Below are positions 20,770 through 29,369 of a stretch of DNA of 64,000 bases, piece after piece. The stretch comes from Octopus sinensis (lineage: Eukaryota), in NCBI RefSeq assembly GCF_006345805.1, contig NC_043021.1, positions 6,634,001 to 6,698,000 on the forward strand, given 5' to 3'. Below the pieces are notes generated by a model. The model was given only the letters and a program-made list of their open reading frames with translations, ran no database searches and was not told where the DNA came from. Made by a program: the position numbers and the translations under genes. Within the stretch, counting starts at the first letter, position 1, and every line of letters starts with the position of its first letter.

Positions 20770-20939
20770 GTGTCTGTCCCCCCAATACCACTTGACAACC
20801 GATGCTGGTGTGTTTGCGTCCCTTGATAGAATAAGTACTAGGCTTACAAAGAATAAGTCCTGAAGTCGATTTGCTCGACTAAAAGGCTGTGCTCCAGCAT
20901 GGCCAGTCAAATGACTGAAACAAGTAAAAGTGTAAAAGA
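20770..20939 (+). mobile_element. SINE family A, 3' half with internal deletion
   Basis: CTTGACAACCGATGCTGGTG...GACTGAAACAAGTAAAAG. Confidence 0.8.
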
Positions 20940-21404
20940 ATACTTACATATTGATATACGTGTGTGTGTATATATATAATCCAGATTAAATGATTAAAAA
21001 AAAAAACACTCTTTCATTAAACAAGTTCGTACATATAAAGTACGTACTTATCGGTTTAGATGTAGATTTTACTCCTGAAGATGCTGTAATAAGGCAGGAA
21101 AGCGCAATCTTGTTATGTACAAGATCCCAAAATGTAATTGTGTGGGTGTTATGGTGGTCTTAAACCAATATTCTACAATGCTTTGTAAATGGAAACCGGT
21201 AGATTTCATTTGCAAGACATTGGTCAGCCTTTGGTTTGTGCTCTGCAACAGTTCCCCAAAATGCTATATACGTCAGGATTGAACTGGGAATCACAACACT
21301 GCAAATCAAAGTTTATTACCATACAGCCATTATACCATGCAGATTTAGTTAAACATTGCTAATAATCTTTTCTTTGTTAAAGAACATTAAATCTCCAACA
21401 CACG

Positions 21405-21860
21405 CAAAGTGTGTGTGTATACGCATATATGAATATATATGTGTGTGTGTGTATACACATATATGAATATATATGTGTGTGTGTATTACACATATATGAA
21501 TATATATGTGTGTGTGTATACACATATATGAATATATATATGTGTGTGTATACACATATATGAATATATATATGTGTGTGTATACACATATATGAATATA
21601 TATGTGTGTGTATATACACATATATGAATATATGTGTGTGTGTATACACATATATGTGTGTGTGTATATACATATATGAATATATATGTGTATGTGTATA
21701 CACATATATGAATATATATGTGTGTGTGTATACACATATATGAATATATATGTGTGTGTATACACATATATGAATATATATGTGTGTGTGTATACACATA
21801 TATGAATATATATGTGTGTGTGTATACACATATATGAATATACATGTGTGTGTGTATATA
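21405..21860. repeat. Minisatellite of about 14 self-complementary 30-34 bp units (ACACATATAT-GAAT-ATATATGTGT)
   Basis: 13 GAA-containing units counted plus one lacking GAA. Confidence 0.9.
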
Positions 21861-22189
21861 CATGCACACACACACATACATACACATAATACTTTGTGTT
21901 GTGTTTGTGAGTGAAGAAAAATTGCTTTTTAAATCGTTCAGTAAATTTGAAAGTTATTTTTAGCTGAGAGATTTGACTTTCCAAAGATTTACTCTTAATA
22001 AGCTCAAGATTATTTCAACTATTTACGTAAATTCCTCAGTGTATGGAGGAAGAAAACATAATTTTGGTTTTGTTGTTCTAAATTCTAAACTGTTGCTTCT
22101 TTGGCAGTTCTCTGCGAGTTGTCGTAATTGCCTCAATAGTCTTTATGATATTTCTGTATTTATCTTTATTTCCCTCCTTCATTGTGTGT

Positions 22190-22705
22190 GTATATATCTA
22201 TATTCTGTGTGTATATATCTCTATCTATCTATATCTATCTATCTATCTATCTATCTATATATATATATATGCATGGAAGGTATACATTAAACAATGATGA
22301 TCTGTATGTATATATATATATATATATATATATGTATGTATATATGTATATATATATATACATATATATAATATACACATATATACATACATATATATAT
22401 ATTATATATATACACACATATATACATACATATATAATATATATATATATATATATATATACACACACACATATATACATACATATATATATATATTATA
22501 CACACATATATACATACATATATATAATATAATATATATATATAATATACACACACACATATATACATACATACATATATATATATATATATATACATAC
22601 ATATTATATATTATATATATATATATAATATTATATCTGCATGGAAGGCAGACATTAAACAATGATGATCTGTTGTAGATATATATATATATATATATTT
22701 ATATA
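22190..22705. repeat. Compound (TA)n/(CA)n microsatellite
   Basis: Direct inspection; source of several spurious I/Y/H/T-rich ORFs. Confidence 0.9.
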
Positions 22706-23890
22706 TTTGCCTAAAACCAATGTTTGCATTCTAATGATGTTTCAATCCTAATGTATATTTATCTCTCTGTAAACTTCTCCATCCCCTCTTCATATCAGTT
22801 GCTGAAGAATTTAAAAGTGCCAAAATACATTCTTCAGGAAAATTTGCTTTGTCTTTTATGTCCGTTTTTGTGTGTATCAATTGTTATACTGATTGGATGG
22901 GACTGTTAGCACCTTTCATACTATGTCTGATTCACCTGCTGGAAGTGAAAGCAAAAATAGAAAAGAAGAAAACCTCCTGTTTTAGTCTGAGTTCCAACTC
23001 CATTTTAACCCTTTCGTTGCCATATTTCTGTTGATATGCAGTGCTTCCGTTTCTATTAATTTTGATAATAATGAAGAATTTAATAAAATGATTTTGTCAT
23101 TATTAAGCTGGTGTTTGGAACTTAAATTAACATGAAATTATTAGGGAAAGTTTTAATTTAGATCACTTCGAAACTGGAAGTTTGTATCATCGAACCAAGG
23201 GTAGTCTCAGGCAGGTCAGTGTCTCCATTTTCAAAGAGGTATGGGAGGAATTGCCGCAAGGGTCAAAATGATTTGACTTTAATGCTCCCACCCATTGCTG
23301 CCACAACCAGCTTTCTGGTCCTGTAAGCCTATGTTAGAAATTAACAAAATTATTATTATGTAAGTTGTAAGTTGGCGGAATCATTAGCATGCCAGACAAA
23401 ATGCTTAGTGGCATTTCGTCAGTCTTTATGTTGTGAGTTCAAATTCTGCTGAAGTCAACTTTGCTATCTCATCCTTATGGGTTGATGTAATCAACTTACC
23501 CACTTCACAAAATTGCTGGCCTCATGTCAAAATTTGCAGCTATTATTATTTTGCACTTGTGATTTAAAAAGGTAATATAAAAGAAGAAAGGGGCTCTCTA
23601 CCTGCCTTTTGACCAGGCTCCCGTTGGCTTTTATGGTTTTTTTCCACCAGGAACCTTTTGTAACGCCTCCCCCTATTGGGAGTTTTTCGTTGTTAAACTG
23701 CTTTTTACTGATTTTTTTTTCACAAACGGACAAAACCCTTTGTAATCTTTCATCCTGTTTTTGTCCCCTTTTTGTTATAATTAATTTTTGTCAGCCCTTG
23801 TGGCCAATAAAAGAATTAATTATTATTATTATTATAATCTAATACAATGTTCTTTTTTCTTCTGTCTTTGCAGGCCCCCCCTAAGTACTG

Positions 23891-26819: not shown

Positions 26820-27046
26820 CGAGGTGGAGCAGAAAAGTTCCTGGCTTTTGGTAAAAGAAAATACAGGAGGATCAGTGGATCAGTTAATTATGATTTTATT
26901 CAATGTTATTCCCCTCTCAGGTTCACACACTTACTGCAGTGGCCCTACAGTTTTTCTCGGCCCTGTGAATGAACTCAGAAAGTTGGGCCTCTAACCAAGC
27001 CTTTCATGATACCCTTAAAGCCAGGAACTTTTCAGCATTCCCCTCA
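26820..27046. mobile_element. Mariner-type MITE
   Basis: TIRs CGAGG..G..GAAAAGTTCCTGGCTTT / AAAGCCAGGAACTTTTCAGCA..CCCTCA, followed by TA; second copy at 50221-50764. Confidence 0.75.
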
Positions 27047-27200
27047 TATTTGTATATGTATGTATGTAGTATGTATGTATATACACTGTGTGTATGTGTG
27101 TAGCAGTAATATTGATACAATAATACAAAAATGCTTAATACATGAATCTTATAAACAAATATATTGAAACAAATCCTTGGCTGCAAATAATTTTATGCTA

Positions 27201-27592
27201 TACTCTTTTGCTCTTTTACTTGTTTCAGTCATTTGACTGTGGCCATGCTGGAGCACCGCCTTTAGTCGAGCAAATCGACCCCAGGACTTATTCGTTGTAA
27301 GCCTAGTACTTATTCTATCGGTCTCTTTTGCCGAACCTCTAAGTTACGGGGACGTGAACGCACCAGCATTGGTTGTCGAGCGATGTTGGGAGGACAAACA
27401 CAAACACACACATATATCTATATACATATACATGATTGGCTTCTTTCGGTTTCCGTCTACCAAATCCACTCACAAGGCTTTGGTCGGCCCGAGGCTATAG
27501 TAGAAGACACTTGCCCAAAGTGCCACGCAGTGGGACTGAACCCAGAACCATGTGGTTGGTAAGCAAGCTACTTACCACACAGCCACTCCTGC
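27201..27592 (-). mobile_element. SINE family A
   Basis: Near-identical reverse copy. Confidence 0.9.
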
Positions 27593-28962
27593 TATGTCAA
27601 CAAAAATATAATTGATTAATCAAAGGGGTTTGAAATTGTTCAAGAATAGACAGACATTATCATTGCCTTGGTTGTTCCACACATTGAGAAATTTTTGAGT
27701 AAGTTCAAAACCACGCTTAACCTTTCAGCATTTAACCTGGCCATATCCAGCCCAGGTGCTCTGCATGTTTTATATTGAAACTGATCTGATCTAACCTCTC
27801 ACACCTATCTTACAATGTCATTCTAATAATATATTAACTAGCACACCGCTGGAATTTCAGAGCTACAAGATAGTGCATGGTTAATTCAAAACAATATGAA
27901 TTGATAAGAAATACATTTGACTAAGAACTCTGAATGCTAAGGGGTTAAGCATCGTGTCCTTTATCTATTGACTCTGTCTGTGTGTGTGTCTGTCTGTCTG
28001 TCTGTCTGTATATATATATATATATATATATATATATAAAAGAAAGGTTTTTATGTGTACAGAAGAGCGCTCAGAGATATGGTAAGTTTTCAACCTTGCT
28101 GATGATTGTTGATATAACACAAAACCATTAAGGTCACAGGATTTATATATATATATATATATATATATATATATATATATATATATATATATATATATGT
28201 GTGTGTGTGTGTGTTGTATATGTGTGTGTGTGTGTGTGTGTGTGTGTGTGCGTGTGTATGTATGTGTGTGTGTGCATGTGTATGTATGTATGTGTGTGGC
28301 GTGTGTATATATATATATATGTGTGTGTATGTATATATATGTATGTGTGTGTATATATATATATATATATATATATACACACACACACACACATATATAT
28401 GCATGCATACAACCTTGTATGTCTTTTACATGTGTGTGTGTGTGTATGTGTACGAGTGAGGGAGAGAGATGCTACAGCTGAAGATGTTTCATAAGTCATG
28501 TATTTAAACCTCTCAACGCACGATATCGAGTTATACTTCAAAATCTGCTTTGCTGAAAATAGCAACAACTCACTGTTTCAGATGAGGCATCAAGCTGAGC
28601 GGGGGGGGGAAGGTGGGGGGGGATTGAGGATGTGATGGGGGTTTGGTGATGGTGGTGGTGATGGTAGGGAGGCGCTAGCTTTTTAGCAGTATCTTCACTT
28701 GTGGAGGCAGCTGTTGTATAAGAAGCACAAGTGCGAAAGAGAGAAAAATGGATAGAATGATAGATAGATAGATGAAGAAGAGATCGATAGGTGAATAGAA
28801 ACTAGGAGGTATGCTATGGAGGGGAGTTTCTCGTGATAAAAATTAAAAGATAAAAATTTATTAATTGTTTGATGAGAAGCAGAACTAGTGATGCATATGA
28901 CCCGGTCGCGGTGTCCCCTGGATCTGGTAAAGTGGAAAAAGGGGTGGGAGAAGCTAATTGTG

Positions 28963-29369
28963 TACTCTTTTACTCTCTTTTACTTGTTTCAGTCATTTGA
29001 CTGCGGCCATGCTGGAGCACCGCCTTTAATTGAGCAACTCGACCCCGGGACTTATTCTTTTGTAAGCTCAGTACTTATTCTATCGGTCTCCTTTGCCGAA
29101 CCGCTAAGTGACGGGGACGTAAACACACCAGCATCAGTTGTCAAGTAATGCTAGGGGGACAAACACAGACACACAAACATATATACACACACACATATAC
29201 ATATATATGACAGGCTTCTTTCAGTTTCCATCTACCAAATCCACTCACAAGACATTGGTCAGCCCAGGGCTATAGCAGAAGACACTTGCCCAAGATGCCA
29301 CGCAGTGGGACTGAACCCGGAACCATGTGGTTGGTTAGCAAGCTACTTACCACACAGCCACTCCTGCGC
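28963..29369 (-). mobile_element. SINE family A
   Basis: Near-identical reverse copy. Confidence 0.9.

Follow-up and report, generated by a model that had tools for sequence, protein, structure and literature searches.

A conserved HIPK start-codon exon within repeat-rich introns of Octopus sinensis, and a plausible circHIPK

The circular RNAs circHIPK3 and circHIPK2 are made in human, mouse and chicken, the circle found in chicken being circHIPK3. At human HIPK3 the circularised exon has an Alu to either side at a distance of about 1 kb at most, the pair being 83% identical over 269 nt, and the removal of either Alu from a minigene abolished circHIPK3 (Zheng 2016, PMC4823868). Against this, circHIPK3 was found to be insensitive to DHX9, and mouse circHipk3 is abundant in spite of being devoid of inverted elements, a fact ascribed to its long flanking introns (Stagsted 2019, PMC6487579). 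The premise of an earlier note on this DNA, that the promotion of these circles by inverted Alus is established, thus agrees with the minigene but not with the DHX9 and mouse results. According to the same authors (PMC6487579), circHIPK3 belongs to the AUG circRNAs, the class that is both best conserved and most abundant, whose biogenesis proceeds via flanking introns of great length (above ~6.5 kb), also in Drosophila, and is largely independent of repeats. That study counts human circRNAs as repeat-dependent when the total distance of the inverted repeats does not exceed about 2.3 kb, and no evidence was found for the translation of AUG circRNAs. A model of convergent origin of circRNAs driven by transposable elements has been proposed on the strength of RNase R data for five mammals (Gruhl et al. 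2021, PMC8516420). With respect to octopus, circRNAs are described as few (296 high-confidence) and low-level, which is attributed to ADAR (PMC9699675); ADAR activity is reported to oppose repeat-mediated circularisation, and cephalopods edit heavily. HIPK has no occurrence in the examined supplements of that paper, a set which excludes the list of the 296 circRNAs.

The window, i.e., the whole stretch of 64,000 nt of Octopus sinensis DNA that was analysed, contains the start-codon exon of 1123 nt that the earlier note had delineated, and its limits are borne out by a strong acceptor and a strong donor (Table 1). The acceptor reads ttcttttttcttctgtctttgcag/G, with a 20-nt polypyrimidine tract and cag located directly 5' to the exon. 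A ctaat motif occurring some 30 nt upstream of the acceptor is a possible branch point. From its ATG the exon offers a frame of 368 codons, which ends on the AG of the exon end, and an in-frame TAA arises within the gtaagc of the donor, so that gene callers stop the ORF at ...RYYR.

Table 1. Coordinates of the exon, the hypothetical back-splice stop, the downstream intron and the SINE copies in the window.
Feature	Coordinates	Strand	Remarks
HIPK start-codon exon	23874..24996	+	1123 nt; counterpart of mammalian HIPK2/3 exon 2
3' splice site	23850..23873	+	polypyrimidine tract and cag
Start codon ATG	23891..23893	+	17 nt into the exon; conserved actgATGCA context
5' splice site gtaagc	24997..25002	+	donor CAG/gtaagc at 24996/24997
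TAA ending the +1-shifted frame after hypothetical back-splice	23908..23910	+	1123 mod 3 = 1
Downstream intron	24997..64000	+	at least 39,004 nt; reaches the window end
SINE copy	637..1082	+	two blast segments, divided at an internal microsatellite
SINE copy	4279..4670	-	full-length, 96%; could pair with upstream + copies if the intron is shared
SINE copy	12640..13021	+	older, full-length, 79%; upstream
SINE copy	20755..20939	+	5'-truncated; closest upstream copy, 2.9 kb from the acceptor
SINE copy	27203..27592	-	full-length, 93% to consensus; 2.2 kb past the donor
SINE copy	28965..29369	-	second full-length downstream copy, 93% to consensus
SINE copy	32243..32639	+	older, full-length, 79%; same downstream intron, rival partner of the two - copies

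The product of the exon comprises an N-terminal region followed by the kinase domain as far as the activation loop, with a Pfam Pkinase match (5e-30). Among human proteins, it matches HIPK3 (7o7i, 2e-113) and HIPK2 (6p5s, 2e-112), whereas the matches to DYRK1A/B are far weaker (about 1e-37). No protein in the searched collection is more than 68% identical, and those neighbours that carry names come from molluscs and annelids. These similarities identify the encoded protein as a HIPK-type kinase and not another kinase of the DYRK/CMGC type. The remaining ORFs of the window that reach 110 aa are devoid of Pfam matches and correspond to translations of microsatellites or tandem repeats.

The exon ends after ...QSRYYR, in the activation loop, with the codon phase AG/G, and database comparison reveals that the ORFs called from many animals stop exactly at ...QSRYYR, and vertebrate gene models diverge directly past RYYR. 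An acceptor located 14-17 nt before the ATG also occurs in four related loci (L001, L004, L005 and L006), the flanks of which are otherwise unalignable, and a donor of the form TACAG/GTRAG follows RYYR in L001, L004 and L005. The donors of L001 and L003 to L005 fall at the same codon; in L006 the acceptor alone is visible. The length of the exon is close to that of human HIPK3 (1099 bp), and this similarity, together with the common 3' boundary and the start codon inside, upholds its equation by the earlier note with exon 2 of mammalian HIPK2/3. The boundaries of the exon are conserved across other invertebrate loci and vertebrates, and are older than the SINEs that surround them.

Concerning the flanks, which the same note had described as long, the description holds for the downstream side, since a tblastn search of 24997-64000 with 26 long homologues and 25 post-RYYR tails as queries (E up to 10) found no further HIPK exon, including the one that encodes APEIILGLPF.... 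On the upstream side, no exon was located in the 23.9 kb 5' of the HIPK exon, and the same 23.9 kb contain neither a CpG island nor a promoter-like island.

The introns are populated by copies of a dispersed, tRNA-derived SINE family of about 400 nt, of which 28 matches, showing 79-96% identity to the consensus and including nine near full-length ones, cover 8.6% of the window. The copies that had been named at the outset as SINE A were located in the expected orientations at 637, 12640 and 20755 (+) and at 27203 and 28965 (-). The tRNA-like head contains a pol III A box, TGGCTGTGTGGT, and a B box, GGTTCAGTCCC, but is too diverged to be called as a tRNA: ARAGORN and Rfam (gathering thresholds) gave no matches over the whole window. 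The search for target-site duplications around the copies yielded only microsatellite-type or 7-nt matches. As a ~400-nt dispersed element with a tRNA-like head, the family resembles, when compared by description, the tRNA-derived SINEs of Octopus, namely OK, OR1 and OR2 of Ohshima & Okada 1994, as cited in PMC4824008.

Several inverted pairs span the exon. The closest of them, of any kind, has a total distance of 5135-5140 nt, which exceeds the cut-off of ~2.3 kb used for repeat-dependent human circRNAs. When a segment of 1123 nt is placed at random in the window, an inverted pair as close as this (5140 nt or less) turns up in 40% of cases, and one within 2300 nt in 12%. The upstream partner spans only the consensus positions 188-247 and 284-399, and its complementarity to 27201-27319 extends over only ~120 nt, at 92%. 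Across the exon the nearest pair gives a predicted duplex of -299 kcal/mol, whereas the + copy at 32243 gives predicted duplexes of -511 and -483 kcal/mol with the two downstream - copies, and pairing on the upstream side reaches a predicted -474 kcal/mol; with one shuffle per pair, the shuffled energies serve as a rough control. The pairs lying within one intron have a spacing equal to or shorter than that of the pair across the exon, and the SINE pairing across the exon is thus weaker than the pairings available within the downstream intron and on the upstream side. Among the related loci, flanking inverted repeats are present at L001 and L006 and are missing within 10 kb on each side at L003, L004 and L005; the pair around the homologous exon of L001, 87.5% identical over 257 nt at a total distance of 2.2 kb, is unrelated to the SINE described here. 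The inverted arrangement is no more than chance and shows no excess over the local background. The SINE flanking is uninformative because of the density of the family and the frequency with which random placements are equally close, and the claim that the inverted SINEs predict circularisation fails on this expectation, on the distance and on the stronger and nearer pairs within single introns.

Were a circle formed, the expected back-splice junction would be ...GATATTACAG/GCCCCCCCTAAG..., to be read AG/G CCC CCC CTA AGT ACT GAT GCA AGC TGC CCC CCA TAA, and the ORF would amount to 368+1+11 = 380 aa. In this respect, the arithmetic of the earlier note (the AG/G join, the TAA and the 380 aa) is correct when read off the sequence. 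Such an ORF would break off within the activation loop and would lack the APE motif and the remainder of the C-lobe. The translation of a circle into a 380-aa protein is unsupported.

The reading retained here, to which a probability of roughly 0.6 is given, is that of a constitutive start-codon exon of a mollusc HIPK gene surrounded by incidental SINEs, any circle being low-level, independent of repeats and devoid of a useful kinase product. Under this reading, the exon would sit between very long introns, about 9% of which is tRNA-derived SINE, and its architecture (a length of ~1.1 kb, with the acceptor a few nt ahead of the ATG and the donor past RYYR) would be ancestral to bilaterians. 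Its chief output would be the linear HIPK mRNA, and the inverted SINE copies would represent a by-product of SINE density rather than a specific device for circularisation. Back-splicing would nevertheless be permitted by the canonical sites, the AUG exon and the downstream intron, which makes a circHIPK plausible at this locus. If formed, the circle would probably be scarce, as suggested by the genome-wide statement on octopus circRNAs and not by anything particular to the HIPK gene; it would presumably follow the long-intron, repeat-independent route of AUG circRNAs, and would not be expected to yield a useful kinase. Some observations count against this explanation: complementarity over ~120 nt suffices in principle to juxtapose splice sites, several inverted pairs cross the exon as they do at human HIPK3, where deletion of an Alu from the minigene was sufficient to abolish the circle, and in human, mouse and chicken the host exon is well known to circularise.

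The alternative that survives best assumes a genuine and reproducible circHIPK, inherited as an ancestral AUG circRNA and driven by long introns and by properties of the exon, with the SINEs as bystanders. It is consistent with the start codon inside an exon bounded by canonical splice sites, with a downstream intron that exceeds 39 kb, with an architecture that further invertebrate loci and the vertebrates have kept, and with the conservation and abundance of a class which is associated with long introns as far as Drosophila, dispenses with inverted elements in mouse Hipk3 and includes the circHIPK3 of chicken. It is nonetheless unlikely, given the global scarcity and low level of octopus circRNAs, the absence of HIPK from the examined supplements of PMC9699675 and the failure to locate an exon 1 in the 23.9 kb upstream. 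Much less probable is the model put forward by the earlier note, in which inverted copies of SINE A, gained independently of the primate Alus, drive an abundant circle that is translated into the 380-aa kinase. The nearest pair, with its 92% identity and its predicted duplex, the human minigene (PMC4823868), the published convergent origin of circRNAs in mammals (PMC8516420) and the unrelated pair at L001 all lend it some credit, but 40% of placements produce the arrangement by chance, at 5.1 kb the total distance lies beyond the demarcation of 2.3 kb, the upstream copy is truncated, and its competitors within the introns are stronger and nearer. In addition, ADAR reportedly antagonises repeat-mediated circles and cephalopods are heavy editors, three of the five related loci are devoid of flanking inverted repeats, and the putative product, from a class for which translation has no evidence, would halt before APE. 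A SINE-driven biogenesis of circHIPK is accordingly disfavoured. Finally, the idea that the exon is the true first exon, with transcription starting nearby, the cag/G at 23873/23874 unused and back-splicing impossible, would account for the missing upstream exon but is very improbable in view of the polypyrimidine tract and cag at the boundary, the acceptor-like site kept before the ATG at four otherwise unalignable loci, the lack of a promoter-like CpG island nearby and the position of the homologous exon as exon 2 in mammals.

Whether SINEs contribute to it (a convergent origin) or are dispensable (an ancestral one), the circularisation of the HIPK start-codon exon in a cephalopod as in mammals and birds is a doubtful, though possible, proposition. 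If true, circHIPK would rank among the very few circRNAs with a host exon and a circularisation common to protostomes and deuterostomes. Its discovery here would allow a single locus to test inheritance against repeated origin of shared circRNAs, because conservation of the exon extends across bilaterians, whereas the repeats on its flanks are specific to lineages and, in some relatives, absent. It would also be informative as a circle in an animal whose ADAR activity is very high, a setting in which suppression of repeat-mediated circularisation is anticipated. At present the sequence shows no more than a conserved exon of an ordinary kind between introns rich in repeats, and it carries a caution: where a single SINE family reaches ~9%, inverted copies round any exon foretell nothing.

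Compared with the circHIPK3 of human and mouse (HIPK3 exon 2, 1099 nt) and with circHIPK2 (Hipk2 exon 2), the octopus locus has the homologous host exon of ~1.1 kb with the start codon inside, long SINE-rich flanking introns, and an exon length which leaves a remainder of 1 on division by 3, so that the frame shifts after one turn. It differs from human circHIPK3 in that the locus is known from genomic sequence alone and its circle is hypothetical, in that the closest inverted repeats lie ~2.9 and 2.2 kb away with 120 nt of complementarity instead of within ~1 kb, and in its tRNA-derived SINE family, which is unrelated to the 7SL-derived Alu. With the AUG circRNAs (PMC6487579) it shares a start-codon exon, canonical splice sites, a very long flanking intron and inverted elements that are distal rather than proximal, but that class is defined by observed circles and the present locus by its genomic DNA. 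With respect to the niches described by Gruhl et al. (PMC8516420), the locus offers the genomic precondition alone, not enriched over the local background; it resembles them as a long, repeat-rich host gene of low GC content (~36%), in which lineage-specific transposable elements provide reverse-complementary sequence round a conserved exon.

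What the sequence verifies at this locus is a conserved coding exon and intronic SINEs, both of an ordinary kind (coordinates are tabulated below). The HIPK start-codon exon opens at ATG 23891 a frame of 368 codons extending to its final two bases, and both the splice sites and the start codon were found where the earlier note had placed them. The exon product contains a protein-kinase domain (Pfam PF00069, 5e-30) and, compared with solved human kinase domains, matches HIPK3 (E = 2e-113) and HIPK2 (2e-112), the next-best family being DYRK1A/B (~1e-37); the exon terminates within the activation loop, ahead of the APE motif. 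The exact ORF (23891-25000) is not on record in sequence collections, and the closest protein in a collection of 5.8 billion sequences is 68% identical. The named protein neighbours are molluscs and annelids, which supports the molluscan affinity of the window.

Other animals share the boundaries of this exon. Database ORFs from many animals start with MQE or MH… and end precisely at …QSRYYR, since an in-frame stop arises from the donor (GTAAG or GTGAG), and vertebrate gene models begin to diverge right after RYYR. Boundaries were also read off the sequences of five related HIPK loci (L001 and L003-L006, protein identity 62-78%), the automatically parsed exon lengths being approximate (the window acceptor was off by 12 nt). 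Four of these loci have the donor directly after RYYR, and in L001, L004, L005 and L006 an acceptor precedes the ATG by 14-17 nt (~9985-10005 in each of these four). The start context ...actgATGCA... (window 23874-23895) is kept in the same four among otherwise unalignable invertebrate HIPK loci, and the window flanks gave no alignment with the two relatives checked, L001 and L002. That the exon could be the first of its gene, with an unused acceptor, is hardly credible given the conserved position of this acceptor in relatives.

Searches of 24997-64000 with 26 long homologues and 25 tails starting after RYYR detected neither the next coding exon (APEIILGLPF…) nor the remaining kinase, so that the intron downstream has a length of 39 kb or more. 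In the 23.9 kb upstream of the HIPK exon, no exon was identified and no CpG island occurs. Since no other ORF of the window has a Pfam match, the 64 kb apparently represent one exon plus intron. The whole window has 36% GC and is strongly depleted in CpG (o/e 0.40); a GC-rich tandem repeat accounts for its GC peaks and sole CpG-rich 500-nt stretch, and explains long spurious ORFs on the - strand. The downstream intron also contains a 104-nt inverted repeat, a potential long hairpin which may be a MITE-like element.

Comparison of the window with itself revealed a dispersed ~400-nt element, the SINE, with 28 hits covering 8.6% of the sequence. In the sense orientation, a tRNA-like head with A box TGGCTGTGTGGT and B box GGTTCAGTCCC comes first, the body includes an internal (TA/TG)n stretch and the 3' end reads …ATGACTGAAACAAGTAAAAGAG; neither ARAGORN nor Rfam called the head as a tRNA. 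As candidate target-site duplications around the copies, only matches of microsatellite type or of 7 nt turned up. The element, which presumably resembles an abundant tRNA-derived octopus element, is not present in L001 and L002.

Features of the window and of the related locus L001
Feature	Coordinates	Strand	Details
HIPK start-codon exon	23874-24996	+	1123 nt; acceptor ttcttttttcttctgtctttgcag/G, donor CAG/gtaagc (textbook)
SINE copy	637-1082	+	
SINE copy	12640-13021	+	
SINE copy	20755-20939	+	3' part of element only; nearest to acceptor
SINE copy	27203-27592	-	
SINE copy	28965-29369	-	
Duplex	20727-20939 × 27203-27592		across exon; −299 kcal/mol predicted
Duplex	27203-27592 × 32243-32639		within downstream intron; −511 kcal/mol predicted
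Duplex	28965-29369 × 32243-32639		within downstream intron; −483 kcal/mol predicted
Duplex	4279-4670 × 12640-13021		upstream side; −474 kcal/mol predicted
32-nt-period tandem array	21409-21863		14.6 copies, 90% matches
Degenerate (TA)n tract	22305-22636		330 nt
(TA)n and (TG)n tracts	25840-25861, 28009-28377		downstream
Inverted repeat	29879-29982 / 30049-30152		85% complementary, 66-nt spacer
GC-rich tandem repeat	37887-38341		unit 63-64 nt (GGTGGCACGTAAAAAGCACCATCCGTTCGTGGCCGTTGCCAGCCTCGCCTGGCCCC...); 6.7 copies; long intron
GC-rich tandem repeat	54767-54982		same unit; 3.4 copies; long intron
L001 inverted repeat arms	9355-9609 and ~12759-13014 (L001)		around homologous exon

The earlier note, which gave the positions and orientations of the SINE copies correctly, took their inverted arrangement around the exon as predicting a circular RNA. 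The acceptor-proximal copy is at best 92% complementary to a downstream copy over 120 nt (20825-20942 against 27201-27319). When a 1123-nt pseudo-exon was slid along the 64-kb window only, an inverted pair being required to share at least 50 nt of consensus, 40% of the placements had such a pair at a total distance not exceeding the real value of 5140 nt, 12% had one within 2300 nt, and the median was 6.8 kb; the inverted arrangement is thus not above chance expectation. Of the proposal that a conserved exon had convergently acquired SINE-driven circularisation, the first half is well supported by the old boundaries shared with relatives and vertebrates.

No nearer inverted repeat of any other kind was found once low-complexity sequence was masked, and the unmasked comparison added only TA- and CA-rich microsatellite arms. 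The 32-nt array and the degenerate (TA)n tract are found 1.2-2.5 kb 5' of the acceptor. Across the exon, such self-complementary microsatellites might pair over a shorter distance than the SINEs, though only weakly. Folding of the RNAduplex type, controlled by one shuffle, predicts that the cross-exon SINE pairing is not the preferred one, and the within-intron pairs have an equal or shorter spacing. Copies that pair inside one intron compete with the cross-exon pairing from which circularisation benefits, and the within-intron SINE pairs should therefore oppose the formation of a circle.

Among the related loci, compared over 10 kb on each side of the homologous exon, L001 (68% protein identity) possesses an inverted pair unrelated to the window SINE (87.5% over 257 nt, total distance 2157 nt), together with a direct copy (8197-8510), located in the upstream intron that also contains one arm, which could compete with the cross-exon pair. 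L006 has a heavy repeat content with many inverted pairs, and L003, L004 and L005 have none. The presence of flanking inverted repeats therefore varies with how repeat-rich the surroundings are and is not specific to this exon.

The arithmetic of the hypothetical back-splice is correct: the AG/G join would shift the frame, because 1123 mod 3 = 1, and lead to a stop at TAA 23908-23910 after 380 residues. The putative product would be devoid of the APE motif and C-lobe. By analogy with mammalian AUG circRNAs, whose exon has the start codon and for which ribosome profiling and proteomics gave no evidence of translation (PMC6487579), the probability that this protein is made or active would be very low.

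As judged from its sequence, the HIPK locus is permissive for back-splicing. A reproducible circHIPK in this animal, the ancestral long-intron and SINE-driven routes taken together, is given a probability of about 0.3-0.35, and that the named SINE copies drive one seems improbable.

Human circHIPK3 consists of the second exon (1099 bp), whose long flanking introns contain numerous Alus; of these, the proximal inverted pair is 83% identical over 269 nt and within ~1 kb per side. In a minigene the circle is lost when either Alu is deleted, whereas deletion of the upstream Alu causes no reduction in cells (PMC4823868). Mouse circHipk2 derives from exon 2 (PMC8151578) and chicken has a circHIPK3 (PMC6406597). 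In the proposal of Gruhl et al., circRNAs shared among mammals are often convergent, arising in low-GC, long, TE-rich genes (PMC8516420), a general model of which the circHIPK proposal of the earlier note is an application. Across 18 octopus tissues, Zolotarov et al. reported overall low circRNA levels, with 296 high-confidence circles retained, 200 of them in one tissue only, a scarcity ascribed to the melting of intronic duplexes by ADAR (PMC9699675); the supplementary files searched, other than the circRNA list, make no mention of HIPK. According to Stagsted et al., AUG circRNAs exceed all other classes in abundance and conservation and go with very long flanking introns, not with proximal inverted Alus, an association reaching Drosophila; circHIPK3 is insensitive to DHX9, and mouse circHipk3 is abundant without inverted elements (PMC6487579). 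The HIPK locus of the window fits the genomic profile of these AUG circRNAs better than that of repeat-driven circRNAs.
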